A DNA stretch of 63,933 bases, filler included, from Lenisia limosa (Eukaryota; Protista; Breviatea), in assembly GCA_001655205.1 (NCBI GenBank). It is 13 parts of 13 records of this genome, joined end to end, with 100 filler letters (N's around TTAATTAATTAA, not from the genome) between each part and the next. Parts side by side here need not be neighbours in the genome. Positions count along the whole stretch, not along the records: positions 1 to 7,847 come from LPNZ01009521.1; 12 more parts are not named here. One strand, given 5' to 3'. The notes beneath the pieces are model-generated. The model made no database searches, had not been told where the DNA came from, and was given only the letters and a program-made list of their open reading frames with translations. Shown piece by piece: positions 180 to 13,480 of this stretch (position 1 is the stretch's first letter; each line of letters starts with the position of its first letter). The position numbers and the translations under genes were made by a program.

Positions 180-638
180 ATGTCTGTTATTGTTCTTAAT
201 CCTTCTGGTCGAGTCAACAACTGTCTTCTGCAGTGTTTCTCCGTTATTCTCTTCCTCGAATTGGGGAAATTAATTTCAGCATCCGAGCTGAGACAACTGG
301 CTCTTGAACTTTGTCATGGAAAACCGAAACCGAGATTGGTAACCGAGGACACCATTCAGGCCCTTGCTACCTTTGACATGCTAGGTGAAGATGTCATCCA
401 TGTTTTGGCGTCTCATTTCAACATTTCAATCAAAACTGTGTTTGCTGATGTCGGTAACACCTCCATTCGTGGAAGGAGAACTGACAAGATTGTCAACGAA
501 GAGTATCCTATTGTTTTGAAGGCAAGTCACTTCGTGATTGAATTCTGCGAAAACTTACAGGTAATTTTTTTTGCTACTAAAAAGTTCAATCAGACGATGA
601 GGTCCAAAAATCTAGCTCTAACACCCATTCTATTTTGA
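180..638 (+). CDS. OTU-like cysteine protease domain ORF inside the transposon
   Basis: Motif order GRVNNCLLQCFS...ASELRQLA...MLGEDVIHVLASHFNISI...PIVLKASHF resembles OTU (GNCLF..., LR, WGGxxEIxAL, IxLxxxHY); ATG at 180; possible GT donor at 561. Confidence 0.55.
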   Translation: MSVIVLNPSGRVNNCLLQCFSVILFLELGKLISASELRQLALELCHGKPKPRLVTEDTIQALATFDMLGEDVIHVLASHFNISIKTVFADVGNTSIRGRRTDKIVNEEYPIVLKASHFVIEFCENLQVIFFATKKFNQTMRSKNLALTPILF

Positions 639-689
639 AGGAAACTAAATCTCCAAAAGGTTTGTTTTAAAGTTTTTCACATCAAGACA

Positions 690-856
690 GAAAATCCAAA
701 GCCGTTGAAAAAAATGTTATTGGTGTCAAAAAATCCAAAGCCGTTGAAAAAAATGTTCTTGGTGTCAAAAAATTTAAAGCCGTTGAAAAAAATGTTCTTG
801 GTGTCAATAAATTTAAAGCCGTTGAAAAAATTGTTCTTGGTGTCAAAAAATCCAAA
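690..856 (+). repeat. 39-bp tandem repeat x~4 between the OTU-like ORF and the transposase
   Basis: Unit AAATCCAAAGCCGTTGAAAAAAATGTTCTTGGTGTCAAA; reads (KAVEKNVLGVKKS)n without stops in the transposase frame. Confidence 0.9.
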
Positions 857-919
857 AAGCATTATAGGTTTTTATTTTTTGATGACTCTCAGAAGAATGA
901 AAGTGATGAAGACATCGAT

Positions 920-2089
920 TTGGAAAGGGGTTCAGTTCAAGAAAATCAAACAAAAATTCAATCCAGTAGGAAATCCTACTCTATCGAAAAGAAACGTGCT
1001 ATATTAAAATCTGTTGAACTCATTGGGCGGAAAAGAACGATGGAAAAATTCAAAGGAATTAATAAGTCAATGATATCACGTTGGGTCAGTCAAAAGGATG
1101 CAATATCCAGTGTTCCTTCAAAGCGTAAGGTGAGGATTACCTCAGACTCTCCTCTTGGTCGAAAAACAACCTTGGGAGATCTTGAAGTTCAATTAATGGA
1201 ATGGATTCGATCACAACGACGGAGGGGACGCCCGGTTTCAATTGAAGATGTGAAGAAACAATCTAATAGGTTGAGTGCCAGTCAACCCTCGTTAAAATGG
1301 ATTCGTGGTATACTGTCTCGGAATAATTTTGTCTATCGAAGAACAACTCATGTTTCTCAAAGCAGTAAGGTCGACCCTGAGGTTATTTTGGAATTCAAAA
1401 AATTTGTTGACCGGCAGCTTACCAGATTTTCAGAATGCAATGTTGGTAATATGGACGAAACCTCCCTTGAACTTGTTCCTAATATCAATATGACTTTGAA
1501 TCAAAAAGGGTCTTCAACAGTAACCGTTGTGCAACCGAAATCGCGACTTCGCATTACCATTCTTCTTGCTATCAGTTATTCTGGAAATTTCCTCACACCT
1601 GTGATTATTTCAAAGAGAAAAAAAGACGATGGGAAACGATACTCTGGTGTTTTAGTCTATTTTCAAGAAAAGGGTTGGAATAATTCAGAGCTTTCAAAAC
1701 GTTGGATTGAAGATATTTGGATTCCCGAAATAGCAAAGTCGAAATTCTTCGGGGTAAAAACTCCATCACTTCTGGTTTGGGATTCTTTTGCAGGCCACAT
1801 GGTGGAGGAAGTGTCCACATATTGCAAGAAAGAAAATGTGAAGCAATGCGTTGTCCCTTCGGGTTACACCTGGTTACTTCAGCCACTTGATGTTGCTATC
1901 AACAAAAAGTTGAAAGCAGAAATGAGGGCCCGTTTTTCTTCTTGGATGGAAACCCACACAGAAACCACAGTGGGGGGTAACCTAAAGTCACCTTCAATAG
2001 AGTTATTTTGTCAATGGCTTTCTGAATCGTTGAAGCTTTTTCCAAGAAAGAGATCAAAAATTCCTTCACTTGCCTCTTGCCATCACTAA
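920..2089 (+). CDS. pogo transposase (HTH + CENP-B-type HTH + DDE_1, DD35D); natural C-terminus appears frameshifted at T5 2037-2041 and would end at 2232
   Basis: GNMDET, LLVWDSFAGH and LQPLDV motifs with 35 residues between the 2nd and 3rd Asp; frame open upstream to 671; the alternative frame after 2041 gives SKKEIKNSF...DDPFEVDADSFVELSFLD*. Confidence 0.92.
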   Translation: MERGSVQENQTKIQSSRKSYSIEKKRAILKSVELIGRKRTMEKFKGINKSMISRWVSQKDAISSVPSKRKVRITSDSPLGRKTTLGDLEVQLMEWIRSQRRRGRPVSIEDVKKQSNRLSASQPSLKWIRGILSRNNFVYRRTTHVSQSSKVDPEVILEFKKFVDRQLTRFSECNVGNMDETSLELVPNINMTLNQKGSSTVTVVQPKSRLRITILLAISYSGNFLTPVIISKRKKDDGKRYSGVLVYFQEKGWNNSELSKRWIEDIWIPEIAKSKFFGVKTPSLLVWDSFAGHMVEEVSTYCKKENVKQCVVPSGYTWLLQPLDVAINKKLKAEMRARFSSWMETHTETTVGGNLKSPSIELFCQWLSESLKLFPRKRSKIPSLASCHH

Positions 2090-2553
2090 TAAAACACAAG
2101 GTTGAAGATTTATTAGCCGATGTAGACAAAATGGATGCTGGAAGAAACTTCTTTTGTGACACTTACACTGATATTGATGATCCTTTTGAAGTAGATGCTG
2201 ATTCTTTTGTTGAATTAAGCTTTTTGGATTAATATAAAATGTCCTTATCTTTTTCGACAAATGTGTGGGAAAGTTGCTTATATTAGGTAATCCGAGTTGC
2301 TTATATTAGGGCAATACCCTAATATAAGCAACTTTTAGGGTCCAAAGTTGCTTATATTCGGGCTTATACGGTATATATATTAAAAGGAAAATTGATGAGG
2401 CAAAAAAAAACAAAAAAAAAAAANNNNNNNNNNNNNNNNNNNNNNNNNNNNNNNNNNNNNNNNNNNNNNNNNNNNNNNNNNNNNNNNNNNNNNNNNNNNN
2501 NNNNNNNNNNNNNNNNNNTCGCAAAATTATCCTTTCATTTTGTATATTGTGTT

Positions 2554-2690: not shown

Positions 2691-5600
2691 CTTCCGACAA
2701 GAAAGTCTCCCGGGAGCCGAAATCATTGGACTCTGGGGGGGGGGGGTAAAACGAAGGAACTTTCGATGAAGAATACTGGCGTAAAGGTACTAATCACGAA
2801 CCGCGAATTATCAATGGACGCTGGGGGAGTAACTTTGGAAATTTTATGAAACAAAAAAGCCTAAATCAACTCTGTTTGCTGACAACACATGATGAAGAAA
2901 GGTACTATTGAAATAATATACGATATGGACCCTGAGAGGAAAAATCTCTACCGCAAACCATCGGCAGCGGATTTGTTTGGGCGCAGTCGTTGCTTATTCT
3001 GAACAACTAATCGCGGCGAGAGGAGTGTTGTGCTGAAATATGGTGAAAAATGGAAAATGATGCATTGTTTCCCTAGATTTCTTATAATATTTCTCTTTTT
3101 CAAAAAAAAAAACCTTGCACTCACAAAATGAATGACATGGTATACCCCAAACATACTTTGCCTGAGGAGGGACGGGCATAGGGCGGTTGTCCTAAAAGAT
3201 CAAATGATAATCAAAGTAACGGGAAATAGAAGGAAATATCTCCACAGCAAACAAAACATAATTTCTGAATCGGATAGGTAATAAATTGTAGTTGATAGAA
3301 AATGACCCTCAAAGCTATTTTTTTTAATGAAGATATGATGGCTGTGCGACAAATCTTGGTAAAACTATCGAAATACAGTGACCGAGATAAGTCTTGACCG
3401 ATTTACCTGGGAGACACATAGCAAATCGGTCAAGACTTATCCCAGTTACTGTATATCACATAGCAAATCGGTCAAGACTTATCCTGGTCACTGTATATCA
3501 CATAGCAAATCGATCATGACTTATCCTGGTCTGTATGTATTATGAATATGATACCGGTTAACTGGGATAATGTTTGCAAACAAATTCAATTTCCCGAAAC
3601 GCACCGGGCATAATTCCTCCGCTAAGCTCTTGGAGCTGCCTTCTCACTCCCATCATCACAATTCCCCTCACTACCCCCCCCCCCCCCCCCCCCNNNNNNN
3701 NNNNNNNNNNNNNNNNNNNNNNNNNNNNNNNNNNNNNNNNNNNNNNNNNNNNNNNNNGGTTTGCCAATGATGATATCGAGCCCTGGAGAGGAGGGAGTAA
3801 AACAAAGGAAATTACGATGAAGAATCATGGCGTAAAGGTACTAATCACGAACCGAAAGTAAAATTGAAAAATTGATGAAACAACTTGATAACAACAAAAC
3901 AAACAAAGCCCAAATCAAATTGGTTACAACACACGAGGGTTGACACCAACAAAAACAAAAAAGCCTCGGCCAGTAGTTTCTGCAGCACACCATCCCATCA
4001 CTTTAGCGTATGGGGGAGGGGTGAAAAGAGTTTGTGGTGTCGTATACAACAGCAACGCCATTATGTTGAATATTATGTTAAAAATTTTGTTGAACACAAA
4101 CCTTCTCTATTTCTAAAAAAACCCATTATGTTTGAACATTTTGTTGAACATTAACCTTCTTTATTAAAAACCAATTCGCCTGGATCACACCTTTCTTTTG
4201 TTATGGGAGCCAATTACCACGGGGGGTATCCACAACAAAATACGGGTAGACTATAATCATATCCTTGACCCCCTTTACCCNNNNNNNNNNNNNNNNNNNN
4301 NNNNNNNNNNNNNNNNNNNNNNNNNNNNNNNNNNNNNNNNNNNNNNNNNNNNNNNNNNNNNNNNNNNNNNNNNNNNNNNNNNNNNNNNNNNNNNNNNNNN
4401 NNNNNNNNNNNNNNNNNNNNNNNNNNNNNNNNNNNNNNNNNNNNNNNNNNNNNNNNNNNNNNNNNNNNNNNNNNNNNNNNNNNNNNNNNNNNNNNNNNNN
4501 NATAAATTTATTACATTACTTATATTTCAAAATCTTCCCTCCCTACCAGACACAAGGCTCTCAGAACCCGGTGAAAACGGCCCGGGCGGTGTGGACAATG
4601 ATCGGGCAATACCGACAGCTGGGGGGGGAGGGGGAGTAAAGCGAAGGAAATTTCTATGAACAATATTGGCGTAAAGGTATTAATCACATGATAAAAAAAC
4701 TCAAACAAAAACAAGCTACATATATCATAATATATTCGCATGGGGGGGTTATACAAAAGACCAGAGGGGTTGGGTGTTTGCATTATAAAACAAAGACAAA
4801 CCTGGGGGAGTGGCCAAGCTAGGAGTTACTGATCTCTGATTTGGGGGGAGGGGTGCTGGTCCTAAAGAATGAAGGATTGGAAATGTTGAAAATTAATAAA
4901 AACAAGGTTGTATCCGGCCGAAGCCGTCCACATCACGTTTAAAGAGATTTTAGATTTTTGTTATCAACACCACAGCATTCTGTGTTGATTAATATCATAT
5001 CTACTACATAACCCTTCAACACCATCATAACTACTCAATATGTTAACCCATATCCACTAGTAATATGATCATATGACCGACTTTCAAGTCGAAATGATGA
5101 ACAAAGATAATAGAGGGTTCATTCCGAGTGTATCATTGACACTTGTCGGTCATTTATCATACGAGTGGATATTTGGTATCATATCACTGCGTGAAAACTG
5201 ATAGTTCTCACGTGTGAAAATGATTCAAAAAGAGAGATGATATGACATGAGATACACTTTACACATCATTTGGTTGATCAAAACAACAATATTCTACGAC
5301 TATTATTATATCACCCGTCAACACCATCATATCTATGATATACTTTACAGATCATAGAGGATTTATAGAGATATTGAACCCCTACGTATTCTTGATCAAC
5401 ACAACACCGACAGACCTTTTTGCGAGGCATTGAGAGGAGTGAGAGGTGTGAGCGGAAAAGACTCATTTGCACTGGGCGGGCTGGGTAGAACGGAAGGACT
5501 TGGCGAATGTTCGAGTGTAGATTTACTGCCACAGTTGTTTAGCAACGGAGGGATTTCGAGTGCGGGTGGAGGTGTAGGGTGGCGCGAGATGGAGGACAAA

Positions 5601-7289
5601 TTGGCAACTGTCGGTTAGAAGAAGACAAAAAGGTGGGGTGAGGGGGTAAGTTTCATACACAAGGTTGCATCTGGCCGAAGCCGTCCAAACCATCATGCTT
5701 ATTAGAGATATTGAATTATGGTATCATTTAATTCCTCCAATCATTTGCCTTACAACTCTGTGATCAGAAAACCGTATTGTATTTCTCCTCACAAAGAATA
5801 AATATCATAGGTGGTGAGGAGATGGATTATCATGCAAGTAATGCTTCACTGAGTTTCGAAAAAAAACTGAATTTATCGATATTTTGCCGTTTTTTTTGAA
5901 CCGAAGAGAAGCCCCACTTGCACATAAAAACTTTGAGGAGTATTTGCAAAAACCCAAACCTGGTGGAGAGATCATCTCAGTGGGATAGGCGGATGATTGG
6001 GAATTCATCGTCGCAAAGTTGGACGTTGGAGCCTTTGGAAGGGGGGGGGGGGTAAAATTGGAAAATTTNNNNNNNNNNNNNNNNNNNNNNNNNNNNNNNN
6101 NNNNNNNNNNNNNNNNNNNNNNNNNNNNNNNNNNNNNNNNNNNNNNNNNNNNNNNNNNNNNNNNNNNNNNNAATGATGGAAGTTTGAAACATATATGCAC
6201 CAAAACTATCGATTATTTACAGGACTATTTGGAACTGAAGCCAGAGGTACTGGCCTTTCATACCTGCTGCTGTGGGAAGATTTTACTGAGACTCGTGGTT
6301 TCATGGATAGTGGATCTGAGGCTAGAGCGTGAACAGAATTCTATTAAAAACAACATAATGGATCAATTAAAATATAAGGTAATAAATAGGTTTTTGAAGG
6401 GGAAAAACAAAACAGATTTTATTACATTAGACTATATTACTAAAAATCTATCAAAGGTAACATAAACTAAGGTAATAAAATCTTACTGGTAAAAAGAAAA
6501 TGACATTTGAACTAGAACTATAACCAGAGCTTCACTTTCGGTTTCAAAACAGAATAAATCCTCGATAAATTCTCGATAAATATCGATATTTTCCGGTTTG
6601 TTGGAACTGAAGGTAAAGCTCTAACCATAAACATAAATTACCAGGTCTCCTCATCAGCCATTACAAAGAGTGAGCTTGCGGAAAACGATATATAATTATA
6701 CCCTTTAAATGCTATCAACCCCCCCCCCCCAAACGTTGGAGCGGACGGTTCACTCCAAAGCCGAGCAGTGTACAGGGTAGTTTTTGTCGGCCGTCGTAGC
6801 ATTATCTCCACCATACCACATGCACCAGTTCGAACGGTTACAATATTACCGTCTGGCGGTAAATGGAAAATAGTAGAATCGAGGAAAAGATACACTGACC
6901 AGGATAAGTCTTGACCGATCATGAATATCGGCCAACACTTATACCAGGTCCCTGTAATATATTTTGAGGATAATAAAATAGAAGACTTGAAACAAAAGTG
7001 CTTGCAAACCTACCCTTAACATAGGACTCTTCGGTGAACGGCTTCAACACGCTGAACTTGGTAACTGGCCGGATGGGGTAGGCTTCACAAAGGCCACAAA
7101 GACTCCAATGTGCCTGGGAGGGGGGGTGAGTAAAATTGGAAAATGTATGAAACAAAGAAGCCCAAAGCAACTATGTTGACAACATACACGGGTTGAAAAC
7201 AACAATAAAACCCAGGCCAGTTGATTCTGCAGCACCGTATAGTAAAAATGCAGTATTTTAAGAAAGAAATACCCAAACAAGAATCAACC
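2691..7289 (-). CDS. Multi-exon gene of unknown function (partial, signal-peptide-like N-terminal part)
   Basis: Small exons bounded by C-run-AG acceptors and GT donors, e.g. 7289-7273 spliced to 7113 gives LILVW-AHWSLCGLCEAYPIRP; further exons near 6890-6735, 5610-5415, 4619-4545, 2723-2691. Confidence 0.5.
2747..2810 (-). repeat. Intron 3'-end repeat family C (also ~3797-3853 and ~4636-4690)
   Basis: TAAAACGAAGGAA(A/C)TTTCGATGAAGAATA(C/T)TGGCGTAAAGGTACTAATCAC occurs three times, each directly beside a minus-strand acceptor. Confidence 0.8.
3376..3451. mobile_element. MITE family D (Tc1/mariner-like, 29-bp TIR CAGTGACCGGGATAAGTCTTGACCGATTT, TA flanks)
   Basis: TIR pair with 3 mismatches and TA on both sides; other copies ~6891-6956, 23565-23646, 30128-30230, 34243-34320, 52850-52897, 59171-59233, 60326-60402, partial 16324-16364. 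Confidence 0.85.
4902..4956 (+). repeat. Dispersed repeat family E (AACAAGGTTGTATCCGGCCGAAGCCGTCCACACCATCACGCTTATAAGAGATATTGAATTAT)
   Basis: Copies ~4902, 5659, 9762, 13352, 26606, 27364, 38030; reverse copies ~30550, 50594, 60631, 60995. Confidence 0.8.
5181..5230 (+). repeat. Dispersed repeat family F (CATATCACTGCGTGAAAA-TGATAGTTCTCACGTGTGAAAATGATCCAAAA)
   Basis: Reverse copies ~29078-29130, 54034-54086, 59260-59293. Confidence 0.7.
6526..6623. mobile_element. MITE family A copy
   Basis: AGAGCTTCACTTTCGG...GAAGGTAAAGCTCTA with internal TATCGATA; flanks actataac/accataaa (6/8). Confidence 0.75.
7114..7272 (-). repeat. Intron composed mostly of repeat family B
   Basis: Minus strand GTATTTC...TACGGTGCTGCAGAATCAACTGGCCTGGG...TTTCATACATTTTCCAATTTTACTCACCCCCCCTCCCAG; splicing keeps the reading frame. 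Confidence 0.7.
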
Positions 7290-7847
7290 CTGTTGGGGGG
7301 GGGGGGNNNNNNNNNNNNNNNNNNNNNNNNNNNNNNNNNNNNNNNNNNNNNNNNNNNNNNNNNNNNNNNNNNNNNNNNNNNNNNNNNNNNNNNNNNNNNN
7401 NNNNNNNNNNNNNNNNNNNNNNNNNNNNNNNNNNNNNNNNNNNNNNNNNNNNNNNNNNNNNNNNNNNNNNNNNNNNNNNNNNNNNNNNNNNNNNNNNNNN
7501 NNNNNNNNNNNNNNNNNNNNNNNNNNNNNNNNNNNNNNNNAAAAGTCAAAGCTGACAAACAAAAACCCCTCAAACAAAGTCCAGAAGGGGAAGGTAGTAG
7601 GGGTCAGGCGCTTGTCCTGGTTGAACTAACGTATATCGCAACACTACAGGGTTAGGAGTGACAACGCGGAAGTATGGTAGAGATGTTTTTTATGGGACCC
7701 ATAGCTATGTATGTATTTATTTGTTTTCCGGAATTTAATTAATGTAGTTTTCTACTTGTGTATGGTGCTGCTATGTTTTATGATATTTAAACGGTCTTTT
7801 TTCGGACCGTAGGGAAGCCCTAATTACGCGATATCCCCCCCCCCCCC

Positions 7848-7947
7848 NNNNNNNNNNNNNNNNNNNNNNNNNNNNNNNNNNNNNNNNNNNNTTAATTAAT
7901 TAANNNNNNNNNNNNNNNNNNNNNNNNNNNNNNNNNNNNNNNNNNNN
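7848..7947. other. Artificial scaffold spacer N44-TTAATTAATTAA-N44 (12 in the window)
   Basis: 12-mer with stops in all six frames at 7892, 14363, 15529, 22453, 26550, 33091, 37553, 39923, 49363, 50697, 61505, 62720. Confidence 0.98.
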
Positions 7948-8019
7948 TAAAAATGGAAATTTGTTGTTATCGACAAATTCAGTTATTTTCAAACCGAAGT
8001 GAAACCCTCATAATATTCC

Positions 8020-9373
8020 CTCTTAATTACCCTCGCACCGTCAACTCGCTTCTTATCACTCAGAAGGTCGATCGTAATGTACCTGAGTTGCGGTGATATC
8101 AAAAAATACGCAATAAAGAACAACAGACATAATATAGACATACAAAAAATGAGTTGCCTACTTAAAATTACCTCTCCCCAAATAAAATATTATGAAATGA
8201 AATATTAAATCAAAAAACTCAACAAAAACAAATAATAATATAATAATAAAAAGAGTTGCCTAGTGCCAACTTAATTGGAAGGTCTCTTCTAGCCGACGTC
8301 GGCAGTTCCGGGATGAAGTTGGTTCTTTGTTCCTCAACTGTCACCTCAATCGGTTCCGAGGAGAGCTCTATAAGTGGGTAAAATTGACAATTTATGTAAC
8401 AAATAAAATAATATTCCAAAATCAACTCTGTTGGCAAGCAACACTTTCGATAGCCGGTCAAGGGCTTCACTTCGGTTCAGAATTTCTTGAAAAATCCTCA
8501 AATCCTCACGATATTTTATAGGTCTTTTTCGAACCGACGTTAAACCCTATTCAGATGATAATATCACAAGTGATATGGGTTAAAATACATGTACGATTGG
8601 AGATTCCCCAACCAACTTTTCGGGCAATACTCAGAGGACACAATAATGGTGGTGTTGGTATTCTAAAAAAATCAATCCCATTACTTAGGGCTTCACTTCG
8701 GTTGGAAAAAAGACTGAATTTCTCGATAAATTCTCGAAATCTAGATATTGTAGAGTTCTTTTTCGAGGAACCCAAATTCTAATGAATAGTATATTATAGC
8801 AATGTGAAATAAAAAACAAGGTTGTATGAACAGTCAATCTCATGAAGAGAAAAAAGGTAAACGGAGAAAACAGTAAATCAGGATGTCGCTGTATTTACAC
8901 TTGGGCTTCACTTCGGTTTAAAAAAACCCTGAAAAATAGATGAGAGGTATCGACAAATTCAGTCTTTTTTCGAACCGAAGTGAACCCATAATTTACACCC
9001 ACTGACGGAAAGGAGTGCAAAGGCTCCGTTACAAATGCGAAACTCAGCAGAACCGCAACCCTACGGGGGTTAAACTGGAATATTCATGAAACAATAGCCC
9101 TAAGGAGAGTAAAACTGGAGAATTTCATATTAATAAATACTACGAAAAATACCAAAATCAACTCAGCCCTAAGGGGGTAAAACTGGAAAACTTATAAAAA
9201 TATAAATTAATATGACATGTATTATACGCCCAAAATCAACTCAGCCCTAAGGAGAGAAAAACTGAAAAATTTATGAAAATATCACCATCACCATCACCAT
9301 CGTCGTCATCATCATCATCATCATCATCACCATCGTCATCATCATCACCATCATCATCATCATCACAACCACC

Positions 9374-9404
<31 letters not shown>

Positions 9405-10899
9405 CAACCACCATCATCACCACTACCATCATCATCATCATCACAACCACCACCATCAACATCATCACCACCACAAACTACATGTCACAACTACCACCAT
9501 CATTATCATCAACACTTGAAACTGACATTTGGCCCGCAGAAAGAGCCAGAGTAGTAGCAATCCTCCAAGTCGTGGCCCTCCGATCCCCTTTGGAACATCT
9601 GAAAGTGAAACATAGCTTAAATTTAATCCGGTACGACAAAGCCGGTAAAATATCGAGGTTTATCAAGTGTTCAGTCTTTTATGAAACCGAAGTGAAGCAA
9701 GGCTATATTACAGCTTTCTGCGCATAGTGACTCTTCACCTCATGTTAATAATGTAATTATGGAATCTGGCTGAAGCCATCCACACTATCACGTTCATTAC
9801 AAATAAAAGTATTCGGCGGAAGCCCTCCACTCCATCACTCTGTCAAGAGGTAACATTAAATTGCTCACTAAAAATGTTATAAAATTGTAGTATTATAATA
9901 AATAGAGAAGAAAATCCCACAAACGTGTTTGTTAATCGTCCCACTCAGCGAATACTCCTAAAACAAATAAAAACAATTCAGAAAACAAAAAGTCAATTAT
10001 CAGTTTATATGACAAGAGTCTTTCATATCAATGCAAAAAAAAAGTGTTACAATAAAACAAGGCAATTACATTGAAACCTCAACCTACGTTTTCATTGTAG
10101 AAAATGATCGCGGAAGCCTCCTGTCTGTTCTGATGGGGATCTACCTTTATTGATTAGAGTTTGTTTTGGAGCAAGAAACGGGATACATTTTACAGCTAGG
10201 GATAAGACGGATTTATCATTAAGGTTTTTCAATAAAGAAGTGTGTAGATATGAGAAAACGGACAACTGTTGAAACATCCTCCCCCAAAACAAAACAAACA
10301 AATATACTATGAAAATAACAAAAATAAAGCCCATCACTTAACAAGAAGAAAGCACTCCCATCCCATCACTTAACAAGAGGAAAGCACTCCCATCCCATCA
10401 CTTAACAAGGGGAAAGCATTCCCATCCCATCACACTTAACAAGACTTAACAAGAGGAAAGCACTCCCATCCCATCACACTTTACAAGAGGAAATATCAAC
10501 AGAGTTATGTAAAATAAGACCGGACAATGATTAATATGTAGAGATGGTAAATATAAGTGGGACTACGATGTATAATATGTGTGAACTGTAATGTACAATA
10601 CGTATGGACTGTTATTAATAATAAAGCGAACAATGATGTATTCTCATAAAGCGAACTATGATGTAAAATAACGCGAGCTATGATGTATACTAAGTGTGAG
10701 TTTGATGTATAATAAGTGTGGACTATGATGAATTAGAATTAAAGGTGCGGATAATAAGTACGAATATGATTAATAGCAAGGGATAATGCGCAATACTTCC
10801 TGGTGAAATTCATACCTCGGACAGAGTAAAAGTGGCCAATCCATGAACCAGTCCTGTTGAAAGAAGGAAAAGAAGCTGCAGCAGCATAGCAGCTCTCAT
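8020..10899 (-). CDS. Multi-exon secreted protein of unknown function (partial)
   Basis: First exon MRAAMLLQLLFLLSTGLVHGLATFTLSE followed by GTATGA donor; later exons ~9598-9515, 9060-9000, 8368-8260, 8075-8030. Confidence 0.45.
8461..8990. mobile_element. Cluster of three MITE family A copies (8461-8549, 8686-8781, 8903-8990)
   Basis: Each starts GGGCTTCACTTCGGTT and contains ATCGA/AGTCTTTTTTCGAACCGAAGTGAA segments. Confidence 0.8.
9291..9500. repeat. (CAT/CAC)n microsatellite
   Basis: Directly visible trinucleotide run. Confidence 0.95.
10331..10490. repeat. ~32-bp tandem repeat x5 (CCCATCACTTAACAAGAGGAAAGCACTCCCAT)
   Basis: Directly visible; the unit contains CATCCCATCACT, the terminus of family B. 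Confidence 0.9.
10550..10790. repeat. Degenerate ~22-bp tandem array (AATAAGTGTGGACTATGATGTAT-like) x~10
   Basis: Periodic recurrence of (G/A)ACTATGATGTA variants. Confidence 0.7.
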
Positions 10900-11946
10900 C
10901 TTCACCCCGCTTGTTCTCTCAAATAGAACCCTAAGGAGATTACTGGACTTGTGAATAGTTATTCTACCATAAAGATCACAAAGAAAACAACGGTTTCTTT
11001 CCATCATGTGCTTGAGAAGTGACAAAACAGCTACTATATAAGCAACAAAAAAAGAAGACTGTGTTCAATACACCCAAGATAATGCCTACTCTAACTCTTG
11101 CTGATAGGAGCGGATAAAAGGCGGATTATAATATATCTCGTCTATGTTTGCAGCAACGCTGTCCTTTTGGAATTGTGGAGAGTAGAGCAATTTTATTACA
11201 CTGTAATTCAAAATCAAGTGCTGCCTGAGTGCTGCGCACAACAAAATATTATAAATATGATATAACAAATAGAAGAGAGGCGTGGGAAGACGGGATGAGC
11301 AAGTGGGGCAAGCACAAGCCGCCATTCAGTAGCTCCATGTAAATATTCATGGAATCTTCACATCTCAGAAACATCTCAGTTTAAATCAGGTGAGGTAATT
11401 AAAACAATTAAATTTCCTAAATGTGAATTGTTAATACTCCTTTCAGTCCTCGGGTTTGAAAAAGAAGGAATTTATCCCCCCCCTCTCCCAACTCCACTTT
11501 CCCAGAAACCGAATAGAAATAGAAATACATGCTACTGCACACACAATAAATAGACTACATCACCATCACTCACACGCCACGCGGGTGTCTCGCGTCTGCA
11601 GAGGTAAGTTCTTTTCGGAAAAAAGAGGGCTTAAGTTTGTGTTTGAAAGATAAAAGGTGTTGTTTGAATATTATATTGAAATGAGAATTAAAAACAAGGT
11701 TGGGTAAGTTTTTGTTTGGAAAAAAGAAAATGTGAANNNNNNNNNNNNNNNNNNNNNNNNNNNNNNNNNNNNNNNNNNNNNNNNNNNNNNNNNNNNNNNN
11801 NNNNNNNNNNNNNNNNNNNNNNNNNNNNNNNNNNNNNNNNNNNNNNNNNNNNNNNNNNNNNNNNNNNNNNNNNNNNNNNNNNNNNNNNNNNNNNNNNNNN
11901 NAATGGTATCAGTCTTAGATTTGCTTGAACTGCCCAACAGACCATC

Positions 11947-13480
11947 CTAGACCTTGATGTGGGTTTGGACGTCTTCGAACCAGACTGCAAGGGCCTTGTC
12001 GAATTCGACCACTTCTTCCACGGATTCACGGAGGTCAACGGGCATGTCCGCAACCCAAAGGTCCCATAGATTGTCACCTTGGTGGGGGGGGGGGGTAAAA
12101 ATGGAAAATTTNNNNNNNNNNNNNNNNNNNNNNNNNNNNNNNNNNNNNNNNNNNNNNNNNNNNNNNNNNNNNNNNNNNNNNNNNNNNNNNNNNNNNNNNN
12201 NNNNNNNNNNNNNNNNNNNNNNNNNNNNNNNNNNNNNNNNNNNNNNNNNNNNNTTCTCCTTTGACCCATTTACTCCAGCAAAAGAAGCTAGATGCTTCTA
12301 GCACCGCATCCCATTACTAACCTGGTGTGGGGATGTGATTTCTCACAGCAGGTCGGGAGGAGGATTCTTCGGTCTTCTCTTCGGCGCCCGTCTCCTCTTG
12401 CTTCTCTTCTTTTGTTTCTTCTTCTCCCTTTCCTTCTTCCTTCTCCTCCACCTTTTCTTCTTCCTTTTTCGCTTCCTTCTCTTCTACCTTCTCGTCTTTA
12501 ACTTCCTCTTCGGGTTGCCCGAGATCGAGGCTTTTCGCCTCTTCAAGAAGTGCTTTTTCAGCATCATCACTTTCCTCATCTTTAGCTTCTTTGTTTTCTT
12601 CTTCTCTCTCCCCTCCTTCCTCTTCTTTTTCTTCCTCTTCTTTCTTATCTTCTTCCTTTTCCTCTTCCTCTTTCTTCCCCACATCTTCTTCTTTTTCCTC
12701 CTCTTTTTCTTCCTCATGGGTGTCTTCTGCATCAGCGGTCTACGACGATCATAAATAAAAAGTATCAGAGCCTCCCTCCATTATTCGTTGAAAACATTGT
12801 TATATTATTATAATTATTATTTTTTGTTATTGAAATATCTAAAGAAGATTATTGAAAACCCAGTCATTTTTAGGGTCTCCAACTACAGCACTTTATTAGC
12901 CCCTTTGACATTGACAAAATCACCCCCCCCCCCCCNNNNNNNNNNNNNNNNNNNNNNNNNNNNNNNNNNNNNNNNNNNNNNNNNNNNNNNNNNNNNNNNN
13001 NNNGTCATCTTCTGAGAGGTCCGCTGAGGCCTAAGGGGATAAGCGAAAATTGGTAAACTATCTAAATATATCGATGATTTATCGAGAAATTCGGTCGTAA
13101 ATCCTAGTCACAAACTTCTAAAATGCATTTCATAATATATTACACAGAGTACATACAAATAAAATCAATAAAACCTGGAGATTCAAAAGAGAAACACGTT
13201 CAGCCTTGATCAAAAATGGTCAATGATGGATCTCAAGACTCTTATCACATGCACTCCTTCATGGGTCTCCTATTATTTGAACTATTTAATTATTTATGAT
13301 ATAGTATCCATATATTTCCAATTATCTGAAGAGATGCCCGATGAAAAATGAAACAAGGTTTTATCTGGTCGAAGCCGTCCACATCAATATAATAAAAAAT
13401 ATTTTGAAATCACCAATTCATTCCTCTCACCGTCCCTTCATAGTGCTCAAGGAATACTTTGGCGATATTCTAAAAGTTAA
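11947..13480 (-). CDS. Multi-exon protein with a long Glu/Lys-rich exon, function unknown (partial)
   Basis: Exon 12741-12322 (TADAEDTHEEEKEE...RNHIPTP) splices in frame to 12077-11947 (GDNLWDLWVADMPVDLRESVEEVVEFDKALAVWFEDVQTHIKV*); upstream exon NIAKVFLEHYEGT ~13482-13444. Confidence 0.6.
12078..12321 (-). repeat. Intron whose two ends coincide with the two ends of repeat family B
   Basis: Donor GTTAGTAATGGGATGCGGTGC = B 5' end; acceptor AAATTTTCCATTTTTACCCCCCCCCCCCACCAAG = B 3' end; middle is an N gap. Confidence 0.7.

Follow-up and report, generated by a model that had tools for sequence, protein, structure and literature searches.

The element and its termini

The window, a stretch of 63,933 nucleotides assembled from 13 parts of the Lenisia limosa genome (GCA_001655205.1), carries near its left end a DNA transposon of the pogo/Tc5 type. 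The element occupies positions 6-2373, approximately 2.4 kb, and is recognized by terminal inverted repeats (TIRs), flanking TA dinucleotides and the domains of its transposase. The left TIR lies at 6-32 on the plus strand and the right TIR within 2273-2373. A repeat search pairs arms that include the TA, at 4-32 and 2347-2375, over 29 nt with 97% complementarity. The TA target-site duplications are read directly from the sequence at 4-5 and 2374-2375, so that both the inverted repeats and the duplication characteristic of pogo ends are present.

One public sequencing run, here termed run X1, contains the element, and its contigs were aligned to positions 1-2400 at a likeness of at least 85%. 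The likeness of the other copies begins at 4-6 and stops at 2373. Several contigs lose their match to the element at these points and continue into flanks that differ from one another, from which it follows that the element is multi-copy and that its ends are true. Several copies of this pogo (DD35D) DNA transposon exist, 6-2373 being one of them.

The same repeat search reveals a subterminal motif, GCCCKAATATAAGCAAC. Three copies are found on the left, at 16-32 and 70-86 on the plus strand and at 49-65 on the minus strand, and four more accompany the right TIR in the region 2273-2373. They are likely candidates for transposase binding sites, judged on sequence. The seven subterminal copies (16-86 and 2273-2363) occur in both orientations and among those on the left a perfect palindrome of 38 nt is formed at 49-86.

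The transposase and the state of this copy

The transposase frame extends over 893-2089 and gives Pfam matches to HTH_Tnp_Tc5 (3.7e-6) and DDE_1 (1.5e-16). Domain hits, relatives and the translation together define what we describe below as putative exon 2 (893-2043, plus strand). It consists of an acidic linker, a first helix-turn-helix (HTH) at about 971-1117 that aligns with the BrkDBD region of relatives, HTH_Tnp_Tc5 at about 1178-1336 and DDE_1 at about 1550-2029, all on the plus strand. The catalytic aspartates are encoded at 1454-1456, 1781-1783 and 1889-1891, with 35 residues separating the second from the third. The combination of a CENP-B-type HTH, HTH_Tnp_Tc5, DDE_1 and a DDxD arrangement with a spacing of about 29-42 is that of pogo transposases, and the assignment to pogo with a DD35D transposase made in the original prediction is confirmed by the two Pfam domains and the 35-residue spacing. 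The nearest transposases among 5.8 billion proteins searched share 31-34% identity, are 433-461 residues long and have the ordinary BrkDBD, HTH_Tnp_Tc5 and DDE_1 architecture. They begin straight at the first HTH and carry neither an extra domain nor a protease.

Comparison of the relatives' alignment with the translations of the window places a frameshift of 1 nt, relative to canonical pogo transposases, at 2044-2046 on the plus strand. The relatives match residue for residue across this position (..LKLFP x KEIKNSF..), where the window has two bases for the codon slot. The open frame stops at 2087-2089; the conserved C-terminal helix (KEIKNSF...) and an acidic tail are found in the shifted frame at 2047-2232, plus strand, ending with a TAA at 2230-2232. 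With one base missing at about 2044-2046 the transposase frame is interrupted, and it also lacks a start codon of its own and would require exon 1. The TIRs were originally described as intact, a word to be qualified for this copy by the frameshift in its transposase, and the copy may be non-autonomous. The indels listed for another run X1 contig that covers 2011-2082, a list from which two are missing, include none at 2044-2046, so the frameshift may be shared among copies.

Another explanation of the change in frame was considered and set aside. A short intron would need one of the GT..AG pairs in 2029-2052, which on inspection by eye are of the wrong length class, and the residue for residue alignment of relatives across the break contradicts it as well. 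An alternative genetic code was a further reading that was dropped.

The 5′ open reading frame

Upstream of the transposase an open reading frame, ORF1, runs from the ATG at 180 to a TGA at 636-638, giving 152 codons (154 residues if counted from the TTG at 174). Cys15 is found within VNNCLL (codon 222-224) and His117, not His115, within LKASHF (codon 528-530), 102 residues apart. All of this agrees with the original prediction of a 152-residue ORF at 180-638 with a candidate catalytic cysteine and histidine. The distance from Cys to His falls inside the range of the viral OTU domains that we retrieved, in the shortest of which it is about 98-110 residues.

Is ORF1 coding sequence? An ATG-initiated ORF of at least 152 codons occurs in 7 of 3000 first-order Markov randomizations of the 892-nt 5′ part (p ~0.002), and the frame of ORF1 has the highest codon-usage score of all six frames when the score is trained on the transposase. 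Together these observations indicate that ORF1 is more than a product of chance. The GC content is 42.5% in putative exon 1 (180-560), 30.1% in the putative intron and 39.5% in the transposase, and the ESM Atlas assigns the ORF1 domain a 'recognition' value of 2771, typical of real proteins.

The locus is represented a second time by an ENA contig of 8188 nt (L002) from a metagenome-style assembly, in which the N runs of the window are filled with real bases. A 275-residue gene call on that contig, P0001, corresponds to the window's own locus and is an artefact, in which the TGA at 636-638 is read as tryptophan.

A probable first exon of the transposase gene

Does ORF1 stand alone, or is it part of the transposase gene? 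The segment 6-179 contains no ATG, the codon at 180 being the first of the element, and in the transposase frame the first ATG is at 1040, already inside the first HTH. The relatives start 3-35 residues ahead of that HTH in the alignment; on the contig of one of them the ORF begins 184 nt from the contig end. A potential donor, CAG|GTAATT, is found at 560/561 and a potential acceptor, TTTTTATTTTTTGATGACTCTCAG|, at 892/893, with a T-rich pyrimidine tract and the AG at 891-892. Joining 560 to 893 preserves the phase without introducing a stop, and among the AG dinucleotides in 671-892, checked by eye, the frame is kept only by that at 891-892. After the join the protein would read ...HFVIEFCENLQ|KNESDEDIDLERGSVQENQ... 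and continue into the HTH, with a compact domain first, then the acidic linker and the DNA-binding domain. If the intron were retained ORF1 would continue to the TGA at 636-638.

The absence of an early ATG in the transposase frame and the in-phase GT-AG join lead us to read 180-560 (plus strand, 127 codons, with the candidate OTU-like Cys/His domain) as putative exon 1 and 561-892 (plus strand, 332 nt) as a putative intron. ORF1 is thus probably the first exon of a single gene, encoding an OTU-like domain fused to the transposase, and joined by splicing according to the signals in the sequence. The original prediction had taken the ORF to be a separate cargo gene upstream of the transposase; an in-frame GT-AG intron argues for a first exon instead. 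The element is absent from the only RNA run of the same study.

Within the putative intron, at 688-882, a 39-bp unit is repeated in tandem about 4.5 times, the copies being 90-95% alike. It is open in four of the six frames, the transposase frame included, and contains no ATG. A coding role as an N-terminal extension of the transposase was rejected on these grounds, at least three other frames being open as well.

Putative exon 1 and the other copies of the element

Among the run X1 copies, at the 85% likeness given above, segment 130-559 is seen in this copy only. The depth over 161-560 is that of one contig (30.5), and the transposase bins sum to 55-247. A second contig, approximately 10% diverged in the transposase, aligns to 70-129, then to 560-663 and then to 907-1214; segment 130-559 is either missing or replaced in it and 664-906 is missing, with a joint from 663 to 907. 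On its right side the private segment ends where exon 1 is proposed to end. Imperfect direct repeats, TTAAGGTCAATTTTTT and TTACAGGTAATTTTTTT, are present at the two edges, both of which bear a similar TTA(A/C)AGGT(C)AATTTTTT string. No further copies were found in 15 billion proteins, nor in the JGI or IMG/VR contigs.

As far as can be seen from the run X1 contigs, which can show that a segment is present but not that it is missing, the domain belongs to this copy alone or to a subfamily of which one member is visible. A protease domain kept among the copies of the family is not what these contigs present, with 161-560 occurring in one of them. Since the exon is absent from sister contigs and from the protein and contig collections, the domain is not, as far as seen, a feature of a lineage. 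The proposal that a pogo lineage had captured a deubiquitinase is thus left unsupported: the nearest transposases have no extra domain and the other run X1 copies do not, at that likeness, have 130-559. It had been said at the outset that loss or degeneration of the ORF in other copies would count against the idea, and within run X1, at a likeness of at least 85%, this is in part what was observed.

Is the N-terminal domain a member of the OTU family?

Searches by sequence and profile give little encouragement. ORF1 has no OTU match in Pfam even at E≤1, and so does not reach the gathering score of PF02338; the original prediction had offered this comparison of 180-638 as a check, and its outcome is negative. 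There is no match in PHROGs or NCBIfam, and none to PDB sequences at E≤10. A word-indexed search of 5.8 billion proteins returned nothing for ORF1. A full HMMER scan of 1.84 billion representatives returned only P0001, the window's own locus, and five internally repetitive proteins. Relatives were sought in IMG/VR, with protein patterns and a degenerate DNA pattern for NNCLLQCF, and in JGI metagenomes, with the ORF1 alignment and the transposase, and neither yielded a true match.

Two of the proteins that emerged from these searches were examined as possible relatives and rejected. P0003, which contains DGNNCLLQCF and derives from a 25-copy array of 290 bp in an ENA contig (L001), scores 32 bits per stretch, which is not significant at database scale, its E-value being inflated by the repeats. 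Past the Cys box its likeness to ORF1 is no better than that of shuffled sequences (z=0.56), and the word-indexed search of 5.8 billion proteins returned nothing for the L001 domain either. P0002, a triple acyl-carrier domain, is 39-41% identical over 54 residues with 32-34 bits per stretch, the E-value again being inflated by repeats, and the carrier-protein likeness was also dropped on the grounds that the ESM Atlas returns no PP-binding family.

For a direct comparison, viral OTU domains were fetched from IMG/VR with the degenerate pattern DGNC(L/F)F(R/S)A and 22 distinct domains were cut out. Pfam finds OTU in five of six viral ORFs examined, four of them over the cut-off. L026 scores 17 bits and L048 has no OTU match, though both are viral OTUs with a perfect DGNC box; diverged viral OTUs thus escape the Pfam model. 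An HMM built from the 22 domains and run against ORF1 with filters off gives -1.3 bits, equal to the mean of 2000 shuffles. The hhalign comparison of ORF1 with the viral OTUs gives a probability of 1.6% with P=0.03, over the Cys box and the ELR helix that follows.

Comparison by language-model features is more favourable. In the ESM Atlas the whole domain is closest, at 0.94 with 192 of 256 features shared, to a cluster of 135-residue giant-virus proteins, the model of which matches OTU clusters at TM 0.57-0.61. Among the 100 nearest clusters OTU, with 53, is the one family represented. Residues 45-127, from which the Cys box is absent, return OTU in 44 of 100 clusters, Otubain in one and a single DUF4833 cluster. 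The L001 domain has the same first cluster as the ORF1 domain. Over the three queries the exceptions to OTU and Otubain are that DUF4833 cluster and one poxvirus-type set (PF19061/PF04441).

ORF1 is colinear with the motifs of Pfam-confirmed viral OTUs both in the hhalign MAC realignment and in a MAFFT alignment made without supervision. A strand with G..NC pairs with DGNC/NCLF, SASELR with h.ELR, the LGEDVIHVLASHFNISIKTVF block with the WG..E..LS..L...I.V motif, and SHF with HY/HF. The Cys box reads VIVLNPSGRVNNCLLQCF, and G10, N14 and C15 fall in columns that are invariant with the viral OTUs in the MAFFT alignment. It departs from the canonical form in that another residue stands in place of the DGNC aspartate and three additional ones precede the cysteine. 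In OTU proteases a histidine within H(Y/F) is expected about 100-170 residues past the cysteine; both alignments place S116-H117-F118 there, at +102. The third residue of the triad is not identifiable, with no acidic residue or asparagine at His +2.

From the single sequence AlphaFold2 (AF2) gives a model with pLDDT 41. With OTU rows in the alignment the pLDDT rises to 73 with pTM 0.67, and the model comprises a strand, four helices and three strands. Foldseek matches this second model to OTU structures only (TM 0.5-0.64, best E 7e-3), a result that is circular: the alignment rows being OTUs themselves, the model demonstrates that the sequence is compatible with the fold but does not prove the fold independently. 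The structural check suggested with the original prediction, AlphaFold followed by Foldseek, therefore yields no usable model from the single sequence and is circular where it is positive.

The OTU-like character originally attributed to ORF1 is thus supported indirectly, by its Atlas neighbours and colinear motifs, but not by Pfam, PDB, HMMER or hhalign, none of which gives a significant match. On these comparisons and models the balance tilts towards an OTU-like fold for the ORF1 domain. Catalytic activity, as judged from the residues present, is less probable than the fold. In our reading it is probably a cysteine protease module of OTU-like (papain) fold that has diverged very far.

Assessment of the possible explanations

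Several questions bear on what this locus represents. Is the 5′ segment a real exon? If so, is the product an OTU protein, and does it belong to the transposase? We consider as the best single explanation, with a probability of roughly 0.4, that a first exon encoding an OTU-like domain is spliced to the pogo transposase and is private to one frameshifted copy. Translation would start at the ATG at 180 and the 332-nt GT-AG intron (561-892) would be removed, joining a 127-residue N-terminal domain in frame, via the acidic linker, to an HTH-HTH-DDE transposase. Cys15 is predicted where the first helix begins, and His117 in the β region towards the C-terminus. In line with what has been proposed for OTU, Ulp1 and VTD in Ginger1, Helitron and MULE elements, the domain would target ubiquitin-type conjugates, either of the transposase itself or of chromatin or repair factors where transposition takes place; alternatively, it may cleave itself off. 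That it shields the transposase from ubiquitin-dependent turnover is speculation. Exon 1 would be a recent or private acquisition, or a replacement of the 5′ part, since among the visible run X1 copies it is found in this one only. The more specific proposal, that the 5′ exon of the pogo transposase encodes an active, diverged OTU-type deubiquitinase akin to the OTU-like proteins of giant viruses, we regard as improbable.

The main rival, which we hold to be unlikely if still deserving of attention, accepts ORF1 as a real coding exon or ORF and denies that it is an OTU: an orphan domain or captured fragment from host or virus, in which the cysteine and histidine are coincidental. Every sequence and profile test is negative, AF2 fails when the OTU rows are left out, the aspartate of the catalytic loop is absent, and the C-terminal half is equally like acyl-carrier domains at chance level (39-41% over 54 residues). 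Set against this, three Atlas queries, with the whole domain, the half that has no cysteine and the L001 domain, name essentially OTU and Otubain only, the four OTU motifs are colinear in order and spacing, and the Pfam cut-off can be missed even by true viral OTUs whose DGNC box is perfect, as happens with L026 and L048. A different objection concerns the gene structure and would make ORF1 (180-638, 152 residues) an independent cargo gene for a free-standing OTU-like deubiquitinase, with the transposase expressed separately. Such a gene would have a full ORF from ATG to TGA with no need of splicing, and the nearest Atlas clusters are indeed small free-standing OTU-like proteins of 120-135 residues. 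The transposase frame would then be left with no ATG ahead of the first HTH, its first being that at 1040, and because the ATG at 180 is the first in the element a single 5′ transcript would translate ORF1 only. The phase-preserving GT-AG pair falls exactly at the expected domain boundary and is followed by the acidic linker, and the sequence that holds the 26 codons past 560 is AT-rich, with 30% GC. We find this explanation hard to credit. Marginally less credible again is that 130-559 represents a non-functional insertion or replacement in a decaying copy, the ORF being open by luck or through recency and nothing being expressed. It would suit a segment found in one copy in run X1, a frameshifted transposase, an RNA run from which the element is absent, and edge repeats (TTAAGGTCAATTTTTT/TTACAGGTAATTTTTTT) such as a microhomology-mediated rearrangement might leave. 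It sits poorly with the length of the ORF (p ~0.002), the top codon score, the exon-like GC content and the Atlas recognition value of 2771, and with an ORF that starts at the first ATG and has a conserved-looking part ending exactly at a phase-0 donor.

Relation to known systems

The first exon spliced to the transposase, our preferred reading, would have precedents. Ginger1 transposons of Hydra, Aplysia and an aphid have an OTU or Ulp1 domain fused to a DDE transposase, and animal Helitrons carry OTU (PMC2836005). Helentrons have VTD and OTU deubiquitinase (DUB) domains, activity having been shown for VTD, and the DUB domains of Helitrons and Helentrons have been proposed to shield transposition proteins from proteasomal degradation (PMC9741609).

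One close parallel is Ginger1. Both are cut-and-paste DDE elements with intron-containing genes and an OTU-type domain on the transposase polypeptide, the intron, the domain and the fusion being putative here. Ginger1 belongs to an integrase-like superfamily and its OTU domain is C-terminal and recognized by PF02338, whereas the element described here is a DD35D transposon with a TA target, and its domain is N-terminal, missed by Pfam and seen in one copy. Helitrons and Helentrons likewise encode a DUB-type cysteine protease within the main transposition protein, which in our case is again a candidate; they differ in using a rolling-circle RepHel protein, and their OTU is canonical and kept over many copies. 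The MULE, CACTA and Zisupton elements with Ulp1 (C48) are similar in placing a protease for ubiquitin-like modifiers, in our case a candidate, on a DNA transposon. They belong to other transposon superfamilies and their protease to other clan members, with the catalytic order His-Asp-Cys in C48 as opposed to the cysteine before the histidine in ORF1.

With the canonical pogo elements (Tigger, pogoR, Passer, Lemi, Mover and Fot; PMC7386202) the element shares the TA target, the TIRs, a CENP-B/psq-type HTH, HTH_Tnp_Tc5, DDE_1 and DD35D. That survey of the pogo superfamily contains zero mentions of OTU, and none of the papers searched here brings OTU together with pogo transposases. The nearest Atlas neighbours of the ORF1 domain (0.94, 0.92 and 0.91) are OTU-like proteins of giant viruses (Nucleocytoviricota), mostly unannotated and 120-135 residues long. 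They are of the same size as the domain and their models are OTU-like, their link to ORF1 being through language-model features and not through an alignment or E-value.

If real, the fusion would be a variation on a known theme, that of OTU, Ulp1 and VTD in the Ginger1, Helitron and MULE elements. What would be new is the N-terminal position of the domain, its occurrence in the pogo group and a divergence beyond the reach of the family model. It would be the first fusion of a DUB to a transposase in the IS630-Tc1-mariner/pogo group, caught at the moment of acquisition given that only one copy carries the exon, and pogo, the most widespread cut-and-paste group, would join the mobile elements that carry DUBs. 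The presence of the exon in one copy and its absence from the sisters would also provide a natural comparison, with and without, for the role of the domain in transposition. Helitrons, Ginger1, MULEs and herpesviruses have each recruited DUB-type protease domains on their own, and such repeated recruitment suggests that mobile DNA in general needs to escape control by ubiquitin. We caution that the case consists of one frameshifted copy in a fragmentary assembly together with indirect evidence on the fold, and is a lead rather than a result.

Other features of the window and related contigs

The L001 contig, assembled from long reads, has at 4407-12428 an ORF of 320 codons that ends in the DGNNCLLQCF domain and runs into the 290-bp array. 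The 25 copies of the array are 98% alike and repeat part of that domain; the array may be real or may be an artefact of assembly. Its neighbours on the contig are genes with phage-tail-collar domains and a Ty3-like retroelement.

To the right of the element the window contains a second TIR-like family (ATACAGTGACC..GATAAGTCTTGACCGAT), within 3370-3540 and at 6887-6919. The copy at 3370-3404 faces a tandem array of three 42-nt units at 3415-3540. Another copy, in inverted orientation, lies at 6890-6919 and shows 97% complementarity to 3467-3496. The family may represent another element of the Tc1/mariner type or a MITE.

A dispersed repeat occurs at 2739-2876, 3790-3988, 4629-4693 and 7117-7235, in three to four copies with 78-89% identity. 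It opens at a poly-G tract (GGGGG.GTAAAACGAAGGAA..CGATGAAGAAT..GGCGTAAAGGTACTAATCACGAACCG) and is followed by a second module, ..ATGAAACAAA.AAGCC.AAA..CAAC.. Most of the assembly gaps, visible as runs of N, adjoin a poly-G/C tract.
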